Source: Dimorphilus gyrociliatus (Eukaryota > Animalia > Annelida). From it: a stretch of 64,000 bases of DNA. Positions within the stretch are counted from its first letter, which is position 1; every line of letters starts with the position of its first letter. Positions 10,019 through 26,901 of the stretch are shown here, piece after piece. The stretch covers positions 724,942 through 788,941 of the forward strand of contig CAJFCJ010000009.1 of the NCBI GenBank assembly GCA_904063045.1, written 5' to 3'. A model generated the notes under the pieces. That model was not told where the DNA came from. It was given only the letters and a program-made list of their open reading frames with translations, and searched no databases. The translations under genes were made by a program, and so were the position numbers.

Positions 10019-13000
10019 TTATTTACAAGTATATTCCGTAATCTTCTTACTACATCTGTTACATTTTACGTCGCAGCACCAAACAAACTTACAATCGCAG
10101 TCTTCCGTTACGTGTTTCTCGTATTTGTTAAATCCTCTCCCGCAACATAATAGCGAACAACCGTCCAGACCGGGTGAATTTTTATTGCATACTCTTCCAG
10201 TTGTTCCCACGCTTCCCCAACCCTTATCAGGTTCGCAGAAAGTTGGAGAATCGATTAAGTATATAAGATCCCTTTTAGAAGGTTCCTTTAAGCTTTTATC
10301 GACACGTTCAAATTTATTTAATCGTCTGTCAAATTTTACAAGAGTTGCTCCATCGAAACGTTCCTTAAGAACTTTGCCAATCTGACGGAAGGGTGCCATA
10401 TCTCTCCAGCATATCTTAGCCGAACAAGAACCGGAAACTCCATGACATTTACAACGATGTCTCATTGTCTTCTTGATTGCCTATTAAACACAGAAATACA
10501 TTTCAAAAAAGTTATTTAAATTCTTTTTTTATACAGTATATAAACTTTTTTAATAAATAAAGATGGCAGCACAAAATGTTTTGAAATCTTAGTCCTTGAC
10601 CGTTACAGATTTTCACCGCATACACTTGTCAAAGGCTCAAATATATACTGTGTTTAAGAATGGCGGAAAGCATAGAAGTCTATTACGATGTCGTTTCACC
10701 CTACTCTTGGCTTGCTTTTGAAATGGCTTGTCGTCTGAGGGAGGCTTGGCGAATTTCCGTCAAATTAAAGCCATTCTTCCTCGGCGGTGTGATGAAAGCG
10801 TCCGGCAACAAGCCGCCTGCTTTGGTCTCCCCAACTAAGGGAATGCATTTGCCAACCGACATCGCCAGATTAGCCAAGTTCTATGGTATTCCAATAAATC
10901 ATAACCCGGAAAATTTCGTTAGAGTTGCATTCAGTAAAGGAACTCTTGGAGCGATGAGATTCATCACTGCTGTAGATTTATGTTGTCCCGAAAAAACTGA
11001 AGAGCTATCCCGCCAACTATGGATCGCCTTTCACTCCCAGGGAAAGGACATTACAGAAGATTCTGTAATTAGTGAGGCGGCTCGTAAAGCCGGATTGACC
11101 GACAAGTGTATTGAAGAGTCACTTGCCGACTCTAGGTCCGCTACCACTAAAAACCGATTAGTTAGCTACACGCAAGAAGCAATTGAAGGCGGTAAGAAAA
11201 AATATTTAATCCCTTAATTTTCTCTTCGCAATCAATTTTTACATAACTTGAACGAAAAACTACAGGTGCGTTCGGAGCTCCCTGGATAGCTGTAACCGAC
11301 CGTAGCGGAAAGAAACATATGGTTTTCGGTTCGGACAGATGGGAAATAATCGCCGATCTTTTGGGAAAAGACTACCCGGGGCCGTTAAGACACTTGTCGA
11401 AACTATAATTTCTGCCATCATTTCCTAATAATTTCCAATGATTTTACAAATTTCTATTCATTTTAAAAGACATAAAAAAAAAAGAAACCTACTTTTCGAC
11501 CCGCCTTGTTGTTCCAGATATTCATAGAACCGTCTTCGTTCATAGATGATTCTTTACTATCGAGAAACTCTCTTGTAAACTTTTCGCTGAAACGAACGTC
11601 CACGGAACAACCTCCCCAAACAAATTTACCCTGGAAAAAGGAAGAAAGATTATAATGACTATATTATCTTTATCTTTCATCTTACATTCGTATTCCTTCT
11701 TCGCACTCTATGATCGCAGCCACAAATATTCATTTGTCCTTTTGAGCACGCCCTAGCTGCCGCATACATTACTCCGGCCGATGATATAGCATAAATATAA
11801 GCCTTCTCCCGTCCCTCTAAAAATATATAAATAAAAAAAAAAGACGTTAAAGGTGGCATAAGAAAAGATTTTAATTGATTCTGCCTTATACAGTATTTTT
11901 TACGCCTACTTAAACTTTTCAATTTTCGGCTAGAATTGTCGTTCAGAATGGGTTTTAAATCTTTCCAATCGGATTTAATAGAATATCTTTTTTTTGGTTA
12001 ACATTCAAACTTCATTAAAAAGTTCAATTATATAGGCGATTAAGAATTGAAAGGATGAAAGCGTCGTTGAGACTTAGAGCGTACGTTACACATATTTAAA
12101 GAAGAGATAAGATTTTTTTAAAAGAGAAGGAAATAGATTAAAAGATAAAATGATGAGAGTAAATTAATTAAATGTGATTAAAGTCGGGTTTTGTTAAGAG
12201 TAAAACTATCAATTAAAGGAAATTTAAATGTCAATAGCTTACTTGTCTTCGTTATGTTACCAAACACGTCAGTTGTATTATAGGTTGTACAATTCCATCT
12301 TCTATCAGAGAATTGATGCTGACACTCTTCAATACCGACTGAAGCTCCTTCGCTAATAACATCCAGAACGTTTCTAGACCTGTGGCATACTTTTCTCTGT
12401 TTTGGATGTAGAATATCCAAGTTTGTGCACGTTGTTGGGTTGGAAGAGAATGTTGTCGAACTTCCAGCAATACCCAAGTACCTGTTTTGTTTTTGTAAAA
12501 AATTTAAAGGAAAAGTTTTCAGAGGGACCAATTAATCTAAAACCGGAAATTTGTAGTTTGGGTATATTTTTTTAAGCGTAGATCCATAGTAAAAACAATA
12601 ATAAACGGTTTAATTAAAAGATCTAAACCTAGCTATCTGGATGGGAAAATACGCACGTTTTATCCATAACTAACCAAAGATAAATATCTAGTTATAAGGT
12701 AAAGTACAATATCAGTTTGTATTTAAAGCTTCATCTGGATCTTAATTAGGTCTCTAGGGAGGCAAGTGGAATGTTTTGCTTGTATCAAATACTCGAATCG
12801 TTCTAAGACTAATCAAGGGAAGGCGTGTGTTTTCGTGTTTATCCAGAACTTTTCGTTAGATTCCCCGTCGAGTTTGGGAATTGCGTCATAGAGTCAATTC
12901 AGTTTTTTAGTTTCGCGCCTGAAATCGGGCGTAAAGTGGCTATTGAAATCGCCAACTTTGTTAAAAGTCCCCTCTGGACAAGATCATTTACGATTTAATA

Positions 13001-13556
13001 TTTGATTACATGCTCATATTTATCTTCTTTACTTTACTGCTCCTTTCTCCTTGTCAATTTAACTGTATAAGATATCTTGAATTGTCATATACACCAAAGT
13101 ACAAGTACTTAAAAACTTTAGAATCTGTTCATATATCCCACTTGAAAGATTGACATAAAAGAAGAGAGGAAAACTTTCATTTTCCTTTTCTTTTGCTATA
13201 GCTTATATAACTCACTTGTCCCGAGGATGTTTAGATAATCGTAAAACGTTCCGCCAAACGGTGAAAAAATAGGTATAATTAAGCAATTAAGTATTTCTTT
13301 CTAATGTAAAACATACTTTAAAAAAGACATAAAATACGAATAGATTAACTTTTTATCAGCTAGATTAACGTATTGAGTAAGATAACTTGTGGTAGTTTGG
13401 CCTGGTTTACATAAACACCTACAAGTTGTAGACTTTATGGTAATTTACGATTAGATTTCGTACAATTTATATTATTTATTACTTTAAATTAACTTACCAC
13501 CAATAATTTCCTTCAATAGTAGTTAAGAAAGTAAAAAGTATCAATGTCGTTCTCAT
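10019..13556 (-). CDS. WntA: Wnt ligand, most likely WntA subfamily (5 coding exons)
   Basis: Exons approx. 13556-13498 ([20 protein letters not shown]), ~12482-12245 (YLG...[13 protein letters not shown]), ~11815-11685 ([13 protein letters not shown]), 11630-11493 (WGGCS) and 10480-10019 ([22 protein letters not shown]). The Wnt call is certain; the subfamily call rests on remembered motifs. Confidence 0.85.
10660..11408 (+). CDS. GSTK1: Glutathione S-transferase kappa, nested antisense in the last Wnt intron; intron 11192-11265; ends in PTS1 -SKL
   Basis: [14 protein letters not shown] active-site motif, [14 protein letters not shown]|AFGAPWI and FGSDRWE. C-terminus ...RHLSKL* with TAA at 11406-11408. 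Confidence 0.93.
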
Positions 13557-13679
13557 ATTTAATGACATCATCTTCTCTATTTTACATCTTCTTGTTAACC
13601 TTACTCGATTCAATTCTTTTCGACGACTGAGGAATCTCTGTCAGAATCAACAACGAAACTGTCTACTCTCCTCGTCCGT

Positions 13680-13693
13680 CCACTAGGGGGCGC
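13680..13693 (+). promoter_or_regulatory. CTCF-like motif CCACTAGGGGGCGC
   Basis: Full match to the CCASYAGRKGGCRS consensus, 124 nt upstream of the Wnt ATG. Confidence 0.65.
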
Positions 13694-14005
13694 TGTCTGC
13701 CAATAAGTTAAATAAACATCAAAAAATCTTATAGAATTGAAACGAAGCGGAAGAAGATCTTGATGAAGTTCTCTTTTGAAAATTTTTGTTGACCTTTAGT
13801 CGGCGGCGTTCGATTTCGAATTAACAGAAACTCGCCCAACTTGGAATGCCAAAGCAGATTAATTAACTGAAGCGTAAATAAAATTTCATTCTTCGTCTTT
13901 TATTCTTTAGGTCCGCCTTCAGCAACTTTCGCTTCACTATACGGGTTAATTATCGTTAAAAGTTTCCCCGCGTATGGATTATGCTAATTAGACGGGGTTT
14001 TCATA

Positions 14006-14019
14006 CCGCCATCTACCGG
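14006..14019 (-). promoter_or_regulatory. CTCF-like motif CCGGTAGATGGCGG
   Basis: 13/14 match to CCASYAGRKGGCRS on the minus strand, about 60 nt upstream of the dioxygenase ATG. Confidence 0.5.
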
Positions 14020-14076
14020 CGTCGATTCGCTTGGTCGATCATTCAATATTGATAGAATATATTTTTTTAGGTCGCA

Positions 14077-15549
14077 ATGAAATTGCTACTATCATTTTCT
14101 GTATTATTTGCAGTGGGAATTTTTGGAGAGCACCATCCCTCTGAATATGTATATTCGGAAGAGCAGTTGTATGATACTATTATGTGGCCAGAAGGTAGAG
14201 GTACAATTCGTCCGGCATTTGTACTCTTCACCGACCCTGAACACGAACCGGAAGTGCAGAAATATTCTATAAACTCCTACGCACTACCTCCAATTAACTA
14301 TGTAGCGTTTTTCGTCCACGATAATGTTACATCCAAACAATATTTGTGGTACGAAACTTCAAGTTTACCAGATATATTTAAAATTGAAGTATTCCCATCC
14401 GTCGTTTATTTGCCGATGAATAAACAATGGAACGAAGCAGTAATATGGACACCAAAGAATTCAAAATCGTTTCTGGAATGGTCTTGGGAACTTCTAGGGG
14501 CGGAGAGGACAATCATTAACACTTTAAGAAATCCGGTAGAAGTTCAATTTGAATCCCGATTGGAGAGAGATACTCCGAAAGTTCCCACATCTTTCAAACT
14601 GGGAGCGGGTGAACAAATTACAAAGTTCTGTTATTTATCCGACAGAGCTCTTGTATACGAACAGGAAAAGTTCTTAGAAGGTTATGCAATTGGGCACGCG
14701 GATGTATTAGAAATTAAGGCACCATCTTATATTTGGAAAGAGAAAAATATTTGGCTTACAGCCCTCGATAAATCAGAGGAGGAACAAATGAAAATTGGTG
14801 AACAGATATCGTGGAATCACGCTTATAGAACATTATTACAAGTCAAACAACCCAGGCTCGTACATAATTTTACAGCTTCCGGCTACCTAAAACGTAAAAT
14901 TCCATCGGCAATTTATAAACGTCTAAAAAGATTTTACGACAAGCATTCCTCTCAGCGACGAGTAGAACAAAATATAGGTGACAGTCATATTAATCAGAAT
15001 CAATTTAACACTACATTAGTCCAATTGGACGAAGATGAAAGAATAATAGTTGGAAGTCATTTAAAACCAATTCTCGAACGTTGGTGCTCATGTAAATTAG
15101 AGCAAACTGCATTTTACGGTATAAGGGAATATCATAAGGGAGCAGTTTTACGAAACCATGTCGATAGAGTTAGCACACACGTTATTTCGACTATCCTACA
15201 AATTCATCAAGAGTTAGAGAAGGACGATTGGTATTTAGAGGTTGTCGAATTCGATGGTACTCGAAAAGAAGTTCGTTTAGAAGCTGGAGAAATGCTATTA
15301 TACGAATCTGCAAAATTGATTCACGGAAGACCAAAGTTATTTAACGGTAGAATATTTGCAAATGCTTTCCTCCATTTTAGACCAGTTTCCGATTGGAATT
15401 ATAAAGCCGACGAGCAGGTTTCGGGTTTGCACGTAAATGGAACATTTGTTCCTCTATACCCAATTGACGATTCTACCTTACAACCAGCACCGATGAACGG
15501 TGGTATACTCACACCAATTCGACTATCGCAATTAAAGGATGAACTTTAG
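14077..15549 (+). CDS. Intronless ER-luminal 2-oxoglutarate/Fe(II) dioxygenase-like protein (signal peptide, C-terminal KDEL), 490 aa
   Basis: Signal peptide MKLLLSFSVLFAVGIFG. YGIREY...LRNHVDR (HxD), MLLYESAKLIHGRP (distal His and Arg) and FANAFLHFRP. Ends LKDEL*. Confidence 0.85.
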   Translation: MKLLLSFSVLFAVGIFGEHHPSEYVYSEEQLYDTIMWPEGRGTIRPAFVLFTDPEHEPEVQKYSINSYALPPINYVAFFVHDNVTSKQYLWYETSSLPDIFKIEVFPSVVYLPMNKQWNEAVIWTPKNSKSFLEWSWELLGAERTIINTLRNPVEVQFESRLERDTPKVPTSFKLGAGEQITKFCYLSDRALVYEQEKFLEGYAIGHADVLEIKAPSYIWKEKNIWLTALDKSEEEQMKIGEQISWNHAYRTLLQVKQPRLVHNFTASGYLKRKIPSAIYKRLKRFYDKHSSQRRVEQNIGDSHINQNQFNTTLVQLDEDERIIVGSHLKPILERWCSCKLEQTAFYGIREYHKGAVLRNHVDRVSTHVISTILQIHQELEKDDWYLEVVEFDGTRKEVRLEAGEMLLYESAKLIHGRPKLFNGRIFANAFLHFRPVSDWNYKADEQVSGLHVNGTFVPLYPIDDSTLQPAPMNGGILTPIRLSQLKDEL

Positions 15550-15969
15550 CTTGAAATCAAATAGTTTTTTAATAATTCTTTTATTTTTTCCTAATTGATG
15601 TAAAAGAAAAATGAATAAAAAGATTAAATTGGTCAAAAAAAAAGCACAAAAAATATTCATAATAAACCCTTTTCCACCATGTTTTTTCAATTCGTTTACA
15701 ACGTTTAAGTCACCAAAGTAAGTTCTTTGAAAGAATACGAAAAATAAAGTCTCTTTTTTTTTGCATTGTTTTATTATTTGTTTTGATTATTTGCTTAAAG
15801 TTGGGATATTCTTGAATAATGTCTTTTTTTTATGTTGTTGATAAAGAAAGAGAAGGAAGAGAAGATAGAGGGGAGAGGAGCGAGAAAGAGAGAGGAAAAA
15901 AGAAATAAGAAACAATAAAAATAACAAGAAAGCCTTAATTAGCACATAGTGTCTTATTTCCTAATTGCG

Positions 15970-16950
15970 CTAAAGCCCTGCAGCTGAATTATTCCATCTG
16001 GCACGGTCTCGATGGATAATCTTCCAAACAGCTTTCATCTCATTAACATTTTGAACGTGACCAAAAATTAACTTATTCCTTGAACTAACTTCTGTAAATT
16101 TTTCGTAAAAAGTAGTTGGAGAAAGAACGTAGCCTGGATTTAATTGAACGTAACTTACTCCCGACCTCTTGGCTAGTAAGCCCGTTACGTAAAAATCATC
16201 GACCCAGAAAAATCCTACGTCTTTAGCAGCTGTTGCTAACTTTCCAACAACTCCGGATGTCAGTATATAAGCGGAACCTGAACAATAAGTAGGGAAGATA
16301 TCCTTTTCGAACTCCTCTTTTGATATGTACCATTTACTTCTCTTCTCTCTAACAACCTTCATTCTATTCCAGACTAAGCATAAGAAGCTATTTTTAATAT
16401 TTGAGTACAATTTTAATTGGTCGATAAGCGTAAAAAGATTAACGAAAATATCATCATCAGTCTTTAGTATATATTTTACATTGGAGCAATGATTCGACAT
16501 CCAAGTTACAGCGGAAACTGCCTTTAGCGTCAAATTCTTATAAGTATCTAAAAAATCTGCTACAAGAACATCTCCGTACATTTCGGATTCCATTAATATA
16601 CTGTCCATGGTTCTATTGTCATCTACTCTTCCTAGAACAAAGATAACCCGAAACCCAGGGAAATTTCTCGGGTTGCCCCATGTATCTCTAATTGTATTTC
16701 TTCTCAGAAGATGATTTGGTGCGGAATGAACGTAAGCAATCAATAGTGAAGAAGAGCAAAACGTTTGTAAAGGTTCAACAACATAACCGACCTTAGAGGG
16801 TGGAGACTGTCCAGTCGCTGCATTTCGGAAGAATCGCATAAATATATACACAAATACAATCGTTACAAAAAAAATAACAGATATTAAAGAAAAATTTGTT
16901 AACAACAGTCGCCGTCGTCGGAATATTTTTTTTTGGCATTTACGACGCAT
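15970..16950 (-). CDS. Intronless GT31-family beta-1,3-galactosyltransferase-like type II membrane protein, 326 aa
   Basis: Basic N-tail plus TM helix, RRNTIRDTWG, DFLDTYKNLTLK, ILKTDDDIFVN (DxD), FPTYCSGSAY and DDFYVTG. Confidence 0.92.
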   Translation of the reverse strand: MRRKCQKKIFRRRRLLLTNFSLISVIFFVTIVFVYIFMRFFRNAATGQSPPSKVGYVVEPLQTFCSSSLLIAYVHSAPNHLLRRNTIRDTWGNPRNFPGFRVIFVLGRVDDNRTMDSILMESEMYGDVLVADFLDTYKNLTLKAVSAVTWMSNHCSNVKYILKTDDDIFVNLFTLIDQLKLYSNIKNSFLCLVWNRMKVVREKRSKWYISKEEFEKDIFPTYCSGSAYILTSGVVGKLATAAKDVGFFWVDDFYVTGLLAKRSGVSYVQLNPGYVLSPTTFYEKFTEVSSRNKLIFGHVQNVNEMKAVWKIIHRDRARWNNSAAGL

Positions 16951-18427
16951 TGCAGATCGTTTTTGCGGTTGATATCACAACCTTGACCTTTACAAAGCGA
17001 CACTAGGCGTCTGCTTTAAAACTACTTTAGCCTTAACAAGGAATTGTACGAAGATTTCTTTTTTATTTTAAAGAACACTCTAGCGGCATTTCAGAAAATC
17101 AGATAAGAAAAGCATGTGCACGCACGCATTGCTTGTTTCTTTCTTGTTCTATACATATGGAATTTAGGCCTAGCAATGAAATTAAATCTGAAAGAAAAAT
17201 CCAATTTCTCCATCCTCACCTATCCGACTGTTTTCATAAAGGTCTCGTTAGGTTAAGAAAATATTTTTAGTTTTGCTTTCATTTCGCGCTTTACTTCCCT
17301 TGACTGTTTTGTATCATTTTCAACAGTAAGAAAAGGGCGGAAATTCATTTTTTTTCTCTTTAAGCCTTGATATTATATTTATTACTTTGTCTGTACTCTT
17401 GTCATATAAATATATTTATACATATATGACCAATTTTTACAAGTCTTACCTTTGTCATTCTACAAGGCACAAAACATAGAAATAGTTTTTAAACAGGTTG
17501 AAAATCTCTCTATCTTTCTATCAATCTATCTGCCTCTTCTGCTAAAAATATTTTCTTTGTTTTACTCAGTTTGATAGCGAATTTTATTCCTATTATTTTG
17601 TCTTTGTACTTTGGTACGTGTCTTTAAATGAACTCAAGTTCTAGTGCACTTTAAGCATCTATGTACCAATTATTACTCCAGACTTTGTTACAATTAATTT
17701 GAAGATTATATTATAGCTGCTGCTTTAGTTTTTTTTGTTTTAAGTGAAAGAACATTTATATAACAGGCAGACTTGATGAGTATATATTTTATGTTATCTC
17801 TATCGTGTTTGATAATGAATAAAACTCTAATAGATTTGATAATATTAAGTAACAAATCACATAAAAAACAATCACCTTGAGATTGGTTAGAGGTTTTAAT
17901 CGTTTTGATTAGCTCTTTCGTTATATATTTATGATTATAATTCTTTTGTTATTTTTTTTTGTATATGAAGAAAAAGAAATGTTACAACAGAAACAAATAA
18001 TAACAGAAAAAATATTATCAAGATTGTAAATCAACAGAGTTCTTTAATAAAATAGAAAAGTGATCATTTGGGTGAGATAACAACGTAAATTCCCTTATGA
18101 TAAAAGTTTTGATAACTATGTATTTTCATCTAGATTCATTTTACATATATATCTTTGTATGTAATTATTTTCGGTTTTTTCTACTTTGCTTTATATTGAA
18201 TATAGACTTTATAATGAATATTTTCGAAACAATAAAATAATTAAAAAAAGGATTATCACAGCCTAAAAGCGTAATTCTTTTAATGCAGTAAAAGTAAACA
18301 ACCTCTTTTTTTAGTTTTTTTTTTTCATTCAATCATAACCGACCAGATAAGAAAATTTGTTTTTTTTTTTAATGATCTGATGATCTTACTCTCTATAATT
18401 ATTATTATATACTGTTTCTTTTTTAGT

Positions 18428-23688: not shown

Positions 23689-26600
23689 ATGGCCTCGTCG
23701 AGTAGACGCCGCCAACGTACAAGTGACAATGATAAAGAAGATAGTTCGTCTTCAACGATTGAGGGATTTCGTTTACCAAAAGCCAATCCTGCTAAACAAC
23801 AAAAGAAAAGCGAAACAAAAAGAAAATCCGATCAGTCACGCAAACGTAAAACGAATACGAACGATGTAGAAGTCAAAGATTTCCAGCTGAGTGATAGATT
23901 ACAGCAAGTTCGTCAATACATAAGACAGACATCAAATATGTTACGGGTAATGAAGTCAGCTGTTGTCAACGAAGACGATGAACGTATCCTTCAAGTAGAG
24001 GAAATGCTTCAAAGATTGAAAGAGCAGGAGAGAAAATATGTACAAATGCTGTTTATTACCAATTCTATGGGCGATCAATCGTCAGATTTTGAATTCGATA
24101 GGCCCATGATTGAAAGTGCTCTCGGAAGACACACAGATACCGATTATGATGATGATGGTATGGAAAATGGTATTAGCGCTCTACAAGAGCAAACTAGCTT
24201 ACTTCGCCAAGTTCTCCATAGAAGAGAGGAGTTAAGGGCTTTACAGGGGCGCCAGGCTGTATTGCTCGCGCTTCAGGGAGAATTAGGCCAAGGAAATGGA
24301 GATATGAATATAGATGCTCAGTCTTCAGACGGGACATCGCAGTCAGACAACGAAATAGTCTCCCCAACAAATAATGCCACTGCATCGAACAGCTCAAGTT
24401 ATGCTGCCGCTGCTCGATTAAACTATGTTAGAAATGTCGGTGACGTTAAAAGCGATTTCGGTTTAGAAGAATTGCAAAATCAAAAATATCATGTTGAATC
24501 TCTACTTAATCAATTGCAATCTCTAAAAGTATCCCCTGAGCCAATTGATATGGAACGACCACAAAACGTAAGGGCGAGTCACGGAAAGCAAAGTCAAGTA
24601 CTAAGAGAACAAAGACAAATACCAGATCAAAGAGAAGTTCAAGCAAAAATGAAGAAATTAGAGGAAGTTAAAAGAAAATTGAGCGAATTAAAAGATTTAG
24701 TTCAATTTTATCAGGCCGAAGGTGACGATAGCTTAGCTACTAGCAATTCTGAAATCACCTCAACTGGGTTACAGTTCGAAAGGCTTAGGGATGCCGAAGT
24801 AAAGCTGCAGCAATTAAGGATGGCCGTTGAAGAAGCTGAAGATGGTGCTGCTGCCCAAGTATTGATAGATCCTGATGCATTCGACGGGGATGACGAAGAT
24901 GACGAAGATGACGATGACGAAATTGATTCAATTGAACAAAACGGAAGAGCTGAAATTATGGATCATCAAGCACACTTAGCTTTTCTTCAGAATCAACTGC
25001 AATTGCTCAATGAACACCTAGAACAAGTAGAAAGGTCTAGTCAATCTACTGGGGTGGCTCAAACTCCTGGTTCCATCAGTGTAACGTTCCAAGAACCTTT
25101 ACCTACTGCTAGCAATGATGAAATTTATGATAGAATGCGACAACAAAGAATTTTACAGGAACAAATAAGAGATCAAAAGAAGGCTTTCGAAGATATGGTT
25201 AGCAAACCGCGAAGGATTGTCGATTCAAGAAATACTAGATTAGGTCCAACAACTAATGATTCGGAGGTAGCCAGTGCAGCGGCAACATCAGTTCATAGTG
25301 CTGCGGCTGCTACCTGGGGTGGCTCAGAAAATTCAGGCCGAAGGACAGCAGCGAGTAATGGTTCTATTCATTCCGATGACACTTTTATAATAGGAGGTAA
25401 TAAATTAAAAAACCTTTACCTTTAGAAATATAACATATCCTTTCTTTACTTACCAGGGACTTCAGGCCCATGTAGACCACCGAATGATAAACAATCAAAA
25501 AAGGAGATAAAGGAACTTAAAAGACGGATAGATTCTTTAACTGAGACTGTTAGTATTCTGCAAAGGACAAATAACAATACGGCTAATGAACAAACAACAG
25601 CGACTCTGCAACAGCAACATGTATTGTTAGCAATGCAACACTGTCTGGCGCAATTGTCACAGCAACAGAGAGATGTTACAAAATCTCAAAGTCATCTAAA
25701 TAAGTTAATTAGCAATCGAACTTCCATAGAAAATCAGAGTAGGACTCAAAAAACCTGGATGAAAGATAGAGCCACTTCTGGTAGTAATACGGCTATTCAA
25801 GAAAAAATATATTCAGAAGTAGCAACGTTAATATCTTTCAACGAAAATCGTCCACATTTTCTCCTTGATGCGGTCAGATATTTGCAACGGTTAAACACAG
25901 ATTTGCTACGTCAAAGAGCTTTATATAATCTTCGAGATGTTGTAGGAGAGAGTGAAACTTCTTCCGGAAAATACACTCTTTCAGAAAGTGATAGAACATC
26001 CACTCCACCTTTTGCTCATGACTCTCTAGGTGAAACAATCATAAATAGAGAGGAAGTTGCAAAACGTGCAAGGAATTTCAGAGCAGTAAAGACTGCAGGA
26101 TTGGATACAAATGCTCTTGATAACCAAGTCAAATGTATCATGCGGGAAGTTACAGGAGCAATTCGGGCCCACGCGAATGATATTTGTTCGACTAAGATGC
26201 TGCAGTATCTAGAACAAGTTGTTCTTCATTCGGTTAGAAGGTACACAACAATAGAATCTCATTCTAATACTATCGAAAAGCAGCTGAGTCGAGTACTACG
26301 TGATTCTCTCACTAAATACAACTCGAGAGCAGTTCAAGAATGTTGCGAGGAACTAATGATTGATATTAGTGAATTATTGTTTAATGAATTGGCCTTTGCC
26401 AGACTTCTTCATGGTTTGAATGAGCCCAACAAAAGAAGCTATACGGAATCAACTGACGAGGTGGATGATGACATTGAGAGTGAAATCATAGGAAGTGCCA
26501 TGGAAGAGGAAAAGCTTGATAGCGAAGCTGAAGCAATGGAAAGAAAGCGAGATGATGAGATGGCGGAATTGGTTGATTCCTATACATCTTCTGATGAAGA

Positions 26601-26901
26601 CGAAGCGATAGAAAAGAGAGAGGTTGAACTATCCTATGCGGAGAGAAAGCCGGTAACTCTAGATAGTGAAGAAGACGAAGCCGAAGGTATCGACGAGACT
26701 GCTGAGGTTATTGAGGAAAATGACACTGCTGTCAGAAGAGAGCAAGAAATAGGAGAAATAGAAATAACAATCGATGACATTCCTAAAGAGGGGTTGAATG
26801 TGTTTGCTATTAGTGGACTTCCCTTACCGACAACTTCTATGCTGGCTGGTGATGGTGACTCACTGCAGAATCCAATAGAACTCGTTGAACAGACAAATTA
26901 A
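23689..26901 (+). CDS. PCM1: Pericentriolar material 1 (centriolar satellite scaffold), ~1050 aa; intron 25397-25456
   Basis: SDRLQQVRQYI...LKEQERKYV, EELRALQGRQAVLLALQ, ATWGGS and IYSEVATLISFNENRPHFL...LNTDLLRQRALY match conserved PCM1 blocks. A short upstream exon (ATG ~23490/23496, donor 23513) is in phase and may extend the N-terminus. Confidence 0.85.

Follow-up and report, generated by a model that had tools for sequence, protein, structure and literature searches.

In the miniature annelid Dimorphilus gyrociliatus, a gene at positions 14077-15549 (forward strand) of a 64,000-nucleotide stretch of genomic DNA, hereafter the window, probably encodes a soluble, catalytically competent Fe(II)/2-oxoglutarate (2OG) oxygenase of the endoplasmic reticulum (ER) lumen. 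The enzyme would belong to an undescribed family, and the gene to the long-standing residents of the worm genome. We put the probability of this reading at about 0.6. The gene had been singled out from the letters alone (the original prediction) as an undescribed secretory-pathway hydroxylase, patchily retained or horizontally acquired, and, if the host were an annelid, as a candidate for the X-position prolyl hydroxylation of annelid cuticle collagens. The host is indeed an annelid. By exact look-up, the protein sits at 739018-740490 of contig CAJFCJ010000009.1 (2.69 Mb) in assembly GCA_904063045.1, an accession given as D. gyrociliatus in PMC10212961. The superfamily and the compartment are familiar; the domain plan, the residues that would anchor the cofactor and the family itself are apparently new.

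At present, protein hydroxylation in the ER is credited to a handful of enzyme families, whose sequence signatures the worm family does not carry. Its plan runs from a thioredoxin fold through a beta-sandwich and a double-stranded beta-helix (DSBH) to an xDEL tail, with an apparently different hold on 2OG. An expressed, intact and host-adapted gene in a tractable miniature annelid offers an animal system for finding the substrate. The family is abundant in diatoms and marine bacteria, so the answer would reach well past the worm.

The gene and its transcript

The gene is a single uninterrupted open reading frame (ORF) in the ORF listing, with an ATG start and 490 amino acids plus stop. The protein starts MKLLLSFSVLFAVGIFGE and ends LSQLKDEL. 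In DNA of about 36% GC, and with 2,373 homologous cluster representatives, an ORF of 490 codons is not a product of chance. The gene is laid out as follows.

14025-14076, forward strand: probable 5' untranslated region; the RNA contig described below starts at 14025, although contig ends cannot establish the true transcription start
14077-15549, forward strand: complete intronless coding sequence, 490 amino acids plus stop (ORF, RNA contig and gene call)

Portions of the window were found in five public sequencing runs. One of them (X5, of unrecorded kind) holds a single 2,984-nucleotide contig collinear with 14025-17008 with zero differences, which runs from 52 nucleotides before the ATG across the full ORF and into the convergent galactosyltransferase gene. 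In the same run, exon 1 of the upstream Wnt gene (13495-13619) is joined straight to 12450-12478, and neither the Wnt intron nor 13620-14024 is covered; because of this spliced junction and these uncovered parts, X5 behaves as RNA. As the long contig is collinear with the genome, the oxygenase gene is expressed, by the evidence of assembled contigs, and its mRNA is unspliced across the coding sequence. The intronless structure seen in the original prediction is thus borne out. A coral metatranscriptome (X1) yielded seven small contigs, six at least 99% identical and one 95-99% identical, all but one lying within 14307-15537.

The ORF might be contaminant DNA, for instance from an eaten diatom, or a mis-assembly, given that the named relatives are diatoms and that the best match among runs recorded as RNA comes from a coral metatranscriptome. 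The gene lies, however, some 739 kb into the 2.69-Mb contig, flanked upstream by a Wnt gene (PF00110 gene call) and downstream by a GT31 galactosyltransferase gene (Galactosyl_T), and one RNA contig links it to that neighbouring animal gene. The remaining long ORFs of the window are animal genes as well (the GT31 galactosyltransferase at 15970-16950 on the reverse strand, a PCM1 C-terminal exon, GANP/SAC3, arrestin, an RFC subunit and an acyltransferase). The GC content at third codon positions (GC3) is 0.31 in the oxygenase ORF against 0.27-0.32 in seven neighbouring host ORFs. Codon usage correlates with that of the host ORFs at rho 0.69, the host genes among themselves giving 0.57-0.86. Proteins from elsewhere are at most 40% identical. 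Because genomic context, GC3 and codon usage are all host-like, contamination and recent transfer are very unlikely, and an artefact can practically be set aside.

Domain plan and fold

An AlphaFold2 model built on a 60-sequence alignment (predicted local distance difference test score, pLDDT, 91.7; predicted template-modelling score 0.89) gives the order signal helix, alpha/beta domain, beta-sandwich, 39-residue helix, beta-rich domain and disordered tail ending in KDEL. The features of the protein are listed below.

14077-14127, forward strand: signal-peptide-like N-terminus, residues 1-17, MKLLLSFSVLFAVGIFG (from the sequence; model helix 2-15, with lower pLDDT)
14149-14496, forward strand: thioredoxin-fold domain, residues ~25-140, cysteine-free (VIA Z 10.9-11.3; Foldseek E 3e-4)
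14497-14715, forward strand: beta-sandwich (perhaps immunoglobulin-like), residues ~141-213 (strands in the model; weak profile match to a designed immunoglobulin protein)
14743-14859, forward strand: long connecting helix, residues 223-261 (model)
14863-15456, forward strand: PHD/P4H-type DSBH catalytic domain, residues ~263-460 (VIA, Foldseek)
15535-15546, forward strand: KDEL ER-retrieval tetrapeptide (read from the sequence)

The protein has the features of a soluble ER resident, namely the signal-like N-terminus, judged by eye from its n-region and hydrophobic core together with model helix 2-15, and the C-terminal KDEL. The ORF, signal peptide and KDEL are therefore found where the original prediction had placed them. 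There are also four N-x-S/T sequons.

In the model, the C-terminal domain is a double-stranded beta-helix of the 2OG-Fe(II) oxygenase superfamily. Residues 263-446 match 2OG oxygenases at VIA Z 11-15 (root-mean-square deviation, rmsd, 2.8-3.8 A; 155-177 residues aligned). A Burkholderia 2OG oxygenase, HalB, the collagen P4H of PBCV-1, Trichoplax PHD and Pseudomonas putida P4H reach Z 14.5-15.2. The best Foldseek match is P. putida P4H (E 7e-9), with PHD2 next and 432 matches at E<=1e-3. The fold assumed in the original prediction is thereby supported by the model, Foldseek and VIA.

Sequence comparison alone gives little of this. Pfam returned for the protein PF13640 alone, at 13.8 bits (E 0.12), below the cut-off of 27 bits, and even at E<=0.01 this profile is found in 6 of 60 family members only. 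NCBIfam gave no match at threshold, and neither the protein itself nor profiles of its family had a HMMER-detectable relative among PDB sequences. A Tet-like hit (E 0.11) and ryanodine-receptor hits in the sequence searches were dismissed as noise.

The N-terminal domains, like the bacterial branch of the family described further on, had gone unmentioned in the original prediction. The N-terminal half, modelled separately, reached pLDDT 93.4. Its first domain aligns with thioredoxins over 100-109 of ~105-111 residues (VIA Z 10.9-11.3, rmsd 2.4-3.3 A), and a profile search gave weak matches to three thioredoxin entries (E 0.14-0.36). For the beta-sandwich, faint VHL-beta signals appeared in one member of 39-60 in Pfam (E 5e-4 to 0.01) and in two VHL complexes in Foldseek (E ~5e-3). 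VHL-beta binds hydroxyproline (Hyp); the one Pfam hit and two Foldseek rows are too weak for this identity to be claimed.

The CxxC/CxxS redox motif that thioredoxin and PDI carry at the N-terminus of helix 2 is absent from the worm protein. The family pattern is a pair of cysteines other than CxxC: among relatives, Cys is present at thioredoxin active-site residue 56 in 34 of 39 and at residue 106, just before the cis-Pro loop, in 30 of 39. This pair may form a disulfide. The sister protein P0027 keeps the first Cys (56) and has lost the second. The worm protein has D53-P-E-H56 at the redox-motif site and no Cys within residues 1-184.

14242-14244 and 14392-14394, forward strand: residues 56 and 106, His and Phe in the worm (family alignment)

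Judging from its sequence, the worm domain cannot be a redox module, since no cysteine occurs before residue 185; we infer a client-binding or structural module.

Active site

Conservation at the active site was read from an alignment of 170 catalytic domains of the family, which gave three principal sites.

15124-15126, forward strand: R350 (GIREY), candidate 2OG or substrate ligand (R in 165/170)
15157-15165, forward strand: H361-V-D363, iron ligands 1 and 2 (H in 167/170, D in 164/170)
15322-15330, forward strand: H416-G-R418, third iron ligand and near-invariant Arg (H in 166/170, R in 164/170)

H361 and D363 stand at the end of model strand 358-361, and H416 within strand 415-418. Other near-invariant family residues are Y352 (163/170), W385 (170/170), Y409, E410, H433 and P436. 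The motifs quoted in the original prediction are all present (VKQPRLVHNFTASGY, QPRLVHNFTASGY, FYGIREY, LRNHVDR, MLLYESAKLIHGRP and LLYESAKLIHGRP).

At residue 425, the start of strand VIII, where P4H/PHD enzymes have the Arg or Lys that holds the C5 carboxylate of 2OG, the worm has R, and the family varies (R33, K27, D25, E23, N21 and others). R418 is a candidate 2OG anchor because it lies two residues past H416 on the same strand and hence on the same side. The nine domains that lack an iron ligand account for five of the six losses of R418 and four of the five losses of R350. The Fisher p values of this co-loss are 7e-7 for R418 and 2e-5 for R350, although the rows are related and the values overstate their independence. 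From these alignments, 2OG would be anchored by R418 and/or R350 (strand I), not by a strand-VIII Arg/Lys. Co-loss in natural dead copies also points to residues worth mutating.

The worm protein keeps all near-invariant active-site residues (H361, D363, H416, R350, R418, Y347, Y352, H368, W385, Y409, E410 and H433), and the enzyme is predicted to be active for this reason. Loss of catalysis with only the oxygenase fold kept (as in a pseudo-enzyme, chaperone or lectin of the ER) would suit a clade rich in dead paralogs, with iron ligands lost in P0045, P0033, P0051, P0062, P0146, P0116 and P0153. The Cys pair of the thioredoxin-fold domain is also gone from the worm copy. Dead copies, however, lose several of the near-invariant residues together, and the worm copy has lost none, which makes a non-catalytic role very unlikely.

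Comparison with known oxygenases

Collagen P4H (C-P4H; alpha2-beta2, P4HA1-3 with PDI) resembles the worm protein as an ER-lumenal Fe(II)/2OG enzyme with a P4H/PHD-type DSBH (VIA Z 12.0 to human C-P4H-II), and in both a thioredoxin-fold module and KDEL belong to the working enzyme. In C-P4H, thioredoxin-fold domains and KDEL come in trans from PDI (PMC13202288). The worm protein, by contrast, carries both in cis on its catalytic chain. P4HA has no ER signal of its own and is held by PDI, whereas the worm protein ends in KDEL. Pfam finds neither a P4Ha_N nor a tetratricopeptide repeat (TPR) match in it; its N-terminal half is the thioredoxin fold plus beta-sandwich, and its PF13640 score of 13.8 falls short of the gathering value of 27 bits. 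Unlike in C-P4H, the strand-VIII Lys/Arg is not conserved in the worm family, R418 and R350 being near-invariant instead. As Pfam threshold, N-terminal architecture and mode of retention all differ, the worm protein falls outside the P4HA family. Nor is it a PLOD or a P3H. The original prediction had likewise set it apart from collagen P4H alpha and PLOD.

The best structural matches to residues 263-446 are PHD-type prolyl hydroxylases (P. putida PPHD 4iw3/4j25, human PHD2, Trichoplax and Dictyostelium PHD, PBCV-1 vCPH 5c5t and Chlamydomonas P4H 2jij), with Foldseek E 7e-9 to 1e-6 and VIA Z 12.6-14.6. The HxD...H triad stands on the same strands, but identity is 9-18% and these enzymes are cytosolic or viral single-domain proteins. 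P3H1/leprecan, PLOD, AspH and P4H-TM are, like the worm protein, resident ER 2OG oxygenases with a matching DSBH (Z 11.2-11.7), and P3H1 has its own KDEL. Their N-terminal modules are TPR in P3H and AspH, glycosyltransferase domains in PLOD, and EF-hands with a membrane anchor in P4H-TM. None has the thioredoxin-fold and beta-sandwich front end, and none is related to the worm protein at sequence level.

Relatives of the same family occur in diatom and protist clusters (ESM Atlas, MMETSP, Thalassiosira, Skeletonema; E 1e-20 to 1e-50, 30-45% identity in the catalytic domain). Many of them share signal-like N-termini and xxEL tails with the worm protein, but they fall in other clades, and the front ends of some differ (ankyrin repeats, shorter N-termini). 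Bacterial fusion proteins, for example from Simiduia litorea, Litorimonas sp., Paraglaciecola arctica, Pseudomonas mangiferae, SAR92 and SAR86 are 35-40% identical to worm residues 245-441 over their C-terminal ~190 residues and share the signature YGIR.Y / H.DR..TH / YE....HGRP / N.F.HF.P. Unlike the worm protein, they have no signal peptide, KDEL, thioredoxin fold or beta-sandwich, and their N-terminal half is a canonical PF13640 oxygenase.

Extent of the family and its tree

An exhaustive phmmer search of 1.84 billion cluster representatives returned 2,373 at E<=1e-3, these being clusters at 50% identity, and 146 at E<=1e-30. The closest non-self match is 40% identical to the worm protein, and the nearest relatives are 38-40% identical. 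Word-index searches left the range from 46% to 100% identity empty, and the extra matches of a profile word search were short catalytic-domain fragments only, up to 59% identical. Named relatives comprise only MMETSP/EukProt transcripts, Skeletonema and Thalassiosira, and the ESM Atlas clusters are mostly Bacillariophyta, in keeping with the original association of the motif pattern with diatoms and other protists. Among the 64 relatives with a visible source there was no annotated annelid or other named animal protein. Databases give the family automatic names only ('Fe2OG dioxygenase domain-containing protein', 'prolyl 4-hydroxylase'), and a literature search found neither a paper on the family nor a characterised member, so the description of the enzyme as undescribed stands.

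The full-length tree (40 rows, 488 columns, LG+C20) separates a 28-row ER-type clade (99/99) from an MMETSP/diatom-type clade. The worm protein falls inside the ER-type clade as sister to P0027 (100/99), and the pair then joins P0032 (94/92). Full-length collinear alignments to members of this clade cover worm residues ~20-445. Tails of xxEL type occur in 61 of the 164 rows of the catalytic-domain tree, with 27 of 32 in the loosely defined group of the worm.

Single samples contribute several members. ERZ25069296 contributes P0002, P0033 and P0032, which belong to several subclades, and four copies stand in tandem on one contig; ERZ22147071 contributes P0038, P0040, P0116 and P0153, two of which are tandem and dead. 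Since several subclades occur in a single sample, the ER-type clade diversified through old duplications, and it often yields pseudo-enzymes.

The tandem array of ERZ25069296 (L001 3797-16601) has two copies of 556 amino acids that are 99% identical, a third of 470-474 amino acids with H416 changed to Thr, and a fourth split across frames (a pseudogene or introns). In ERZ22147071, P0153 (M/G/I at the iron-ligand positions) and P0116 (S/T/F) lie ~5 kb apart on ctg30955l, at ~459.9-468.2 kb; they keep signal-like N-termini and HKEL/KDEL tails and look like natural ER-resident pseudo-oxygenases.

Origin of the worm gene

The two origins offered in the original prediction, patchy retention and horizontal acquisition, both stand as options, and the evidence leans towards the first. 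By transfer, a protist donor, whether diatom-like or not, would have passed the gene to the lineage of dinophilids or annelids, where it was then domesticated. Such a course fits the fact that every relative with an organism name is a diatom or protist transcriptome, the lack of an annotated animal protein among the 64 relatives with a visible source, the 38-40% identity of the nearest relative and the intronless state of the worm gene. The worm protein lies, however, outside the named diatom/MMETSP clades, within the separate ER-type clade, and its codon usage is fully host-like. The sister gene P0027, on an AT-rich contig (22-31% GC), has a canonical GT-AG spliceosomal intron of ~140 nucleotides at the position of worm Q375/I376. 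D. gyrociliatus, for its part, has lost many introns (PMC7854359). Because of these two facts, the lack of introns is not diagnostic.

The surroundings of other family members also speak against a protist source. The contig of P0032 (ERZ25069296) also carries an alpha-tubulin whose identity to the tubulins of rotifers, vertebrates and cnidarians is 80-82%, against 65-73% to those of dinoflagellates, choanoflagellates, other protists and fungi. The copies of ERZ22147071 lie on Mb-scale contigs crowded with LINE, Harbinger and MADF elements. These surroundings suggest that other animals or large-genome eukaryotes carry the ER-type clade. Next to P0002, P0027, P0038, P0040, P0116, P0153 and P0115 stand transposons or unannotated ORFs, so that among neighbouring genes the tubulin alone gave a usable hint. 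Because of the host-like composition, the intron of the sister gene and the position of P0032 next to an animal-like tubulin, old residence with patchy retention is somewhat favoured, and transfer from a protist is the less likely course.

Bacterial branch

P0028 lies on a bacterial contig beside ClpX/ClpP, a histidine kinase and AhpC, and carries the family catalytic domain twice, at 40% and 35% identity to the worm protein. With the bacterial-clade alignment, a scan of one genome per bacterial or archaeal species gave 110 relatives, complete isolate genomes included. They belong mostly to marine Gamma-, Alpha- and Betaproteobacteria, with single matches in other groups such as Pirellula. The bacterial relatives, of ~490-498 amino acids, consist of a canonical PF13640 domain fused to the family catalytic domain. 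In the catalytic-domain tree they form a clade of their own, remote from the worm protein, and these sequence comparisons lend no support to a direct bacterial origin of the worm gene. Their neighbourhoods (histidine kinase/response regulator, chemotaxis receptor, peptidases, nuclease) are uninformative on the substrate because they are not conserved.

On the bacterial contig of P0028 (L003 1849-6760), a 933-amino-acid protein with two units of PF13640 plus family domain is followed by a 283-amino-acid PF13640 protein and then by a gene resembling a PMT-type protein O-mannosyltransferase. The arrangement could be a hydroxylation-glycosylation cassette. This placing of a PMT-type gene was not seen at the three isolate-genome loci examined.

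Proposed function

According to the proposed mechanism, the signal-like N-terminus would bring the protein into the ER, and KDEL would return it there via the KDEL receptor. Iron would be bound by H361-x-D363...H416 within the PHD/P4H-type DSBH, and 2OG held by R418 and/or R350 in place of the strand-VIII Arg/Lys. The enzyme would hydroxylate a side chain of proteins in transit through the ER, and the fold makes proline the first candidate residue, with lysine, Asp and Asn as other options. The cysteine-free thioredoxin-fold domain and the beta-sandwich may hold the client, much as redox-inactive PDI domains do in trans for collagen P4H. The worm gene would then be a surviving line of an old eukaryotic ER clade marked by repeated duplication.

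Two points weigh against this proposal. Non-prolyl 2OG enzymes match the modelled fold about as strongly as prolyl hydroxylases do (HalB Z 15.0, ALKBH7 13.2, ectoine hydroxylase, halogenases), and so the fold does not fix the chemistry. With the Cys56/Cys106 pair lost, the N-terminal domain of the worm protein may work unlike that of its relatives. As several non-prolyl enzymes match equally well, proline as the target residue, suggested by the fold neighbours alone, is at best tentative and somewhat short of even odds.

A non-protein substrate of the ER lumen (a lipid, glycan or small metabolite) would agree with the comparable VIA Z of small-molecule enzymes (HalB, again 15.0, SnoK 13.1, AviO1, EvdO, ectoine hydroxylase and PhyH) and with bacterial relatives that are cytoplasmic fusions in no conserved neighbourhood. 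To our knowledge, however, all soluble ER-lumenal 2OG oxygenases (C-P4H, P3H, PLOD, AspH) act on proteins, a precedent that counts against such a substrate. In the ER, a thioredoxin fold combined with an immunoglobulin-like domain typically serves to handle proteins or peptides, and the bacterial partner domain is a canonical P4H-type PF13640. A non-protein substrate is thus unlikely.

The more specific proposal that the enzyme 4-hydroxylates the X-position proline of annelid cuticle collagen has in its favour the annelid host and an ER-lumenal protein with a prolyl-hydroxylase-type fold. Annelid cuticle collagens have Hyp in the X position, and we know of no gene identified for the annelid X-position prolyl hydroxylase. 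The collagen link of the original prediction nevertheless found no backing. There is no annotated annelid protein among the 64 relatives with a visible source, and a 15-billion-protein collection holds no ortholog above 40% identity (the nearest relatives being 38-40% identical), which is unexpected for an annelid-wide trait. The family is mainly protistan and bacterial, from organisms without cuticle collagen; a peptide-binding domain of the collagen type (TPR) is absent from the protein; and no paper connecting the family with cuticle collagen was found. This role is highly improbable.

A broader and rather doubtful idea is that the family is a fourth kind of eukaryotic ER-lumenal protein hydroxylase beside C-P4H/P3H, PLOD and AspH, with its own PDI-like client module and retrieval signal and a non-canonical arginine pair for binding 2OG, which makes Hyp or hydroxylysine on non-collagen secretory proteins. 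If so, its reactions could include hydroxylations of diatom cell-wall proteins and of worm cuticle or matrix proteins that are as yet without an enzyme, and the dead paralogs could have been recruited as binders of the same clients.

Neighbouring genes and other features of the window

Further features adjoining the oxygenase gene are the following.

13620-14024, no strand: intergenic between the divergent Wnt and oxygenase genes, presumed shared promoter region (X5 coverage is zero here with both flanks covered)
15614-15619 and 15661-15666, forward strand: two AATAAA hexamers, candidate poly(A) signals in the 3' untranslated region (read from the sequence)

The Wnt gene (12450-13619, reverse strand) stands head-to-head with the oxygenase gene. 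Its exon 1, at ~13495-13619, has an ATG and a signal-like start; the donor is GTAAGT (reverse strand), and 13495 is spliced to 12478 in three runs. A low-depth contig of X1 joins Wnt position 12478 to 13348 instead, at a non-canonical site, and may be a chimera. Intergenic 13747-13997 is present in two runs from related organisms (X2 and X3) with 3-4 differences per 151-249 nucleotides, and the Wnt exon beside it is less conserved there (11-13 differences per 131-197 nucleotides). At 90% identity or above, neither of these two runs matches any part of the oxygenase ORF. An Rfam search of 12000-17500, aimed at conserved 13747-13997, gave no match; this segment may be a Wnt 5' untranslated region or a promoter element.

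Downstream, the intronless GT31 beta-1,3-galactosyltransferase gene (15550-16950 region) is convergent with the oxygenase gene across a 420-nucleotide spacer. As the single RNA contig 14025-17008 covers both genes, their 3' ends probably overlap within this spacer. Plant Hyp-O-galactosyltransferases are likewise GT31 enzymes, and the adjacency of the two genes may be a coincidence. Farther away, the PCM1_C exon (25624-26901) is immediately preceded, on its own strand, by a 578-amino-acid ORF (23689-25425) for which Pfam gave nothing; this ORF probably represents a large exon of PCM1.

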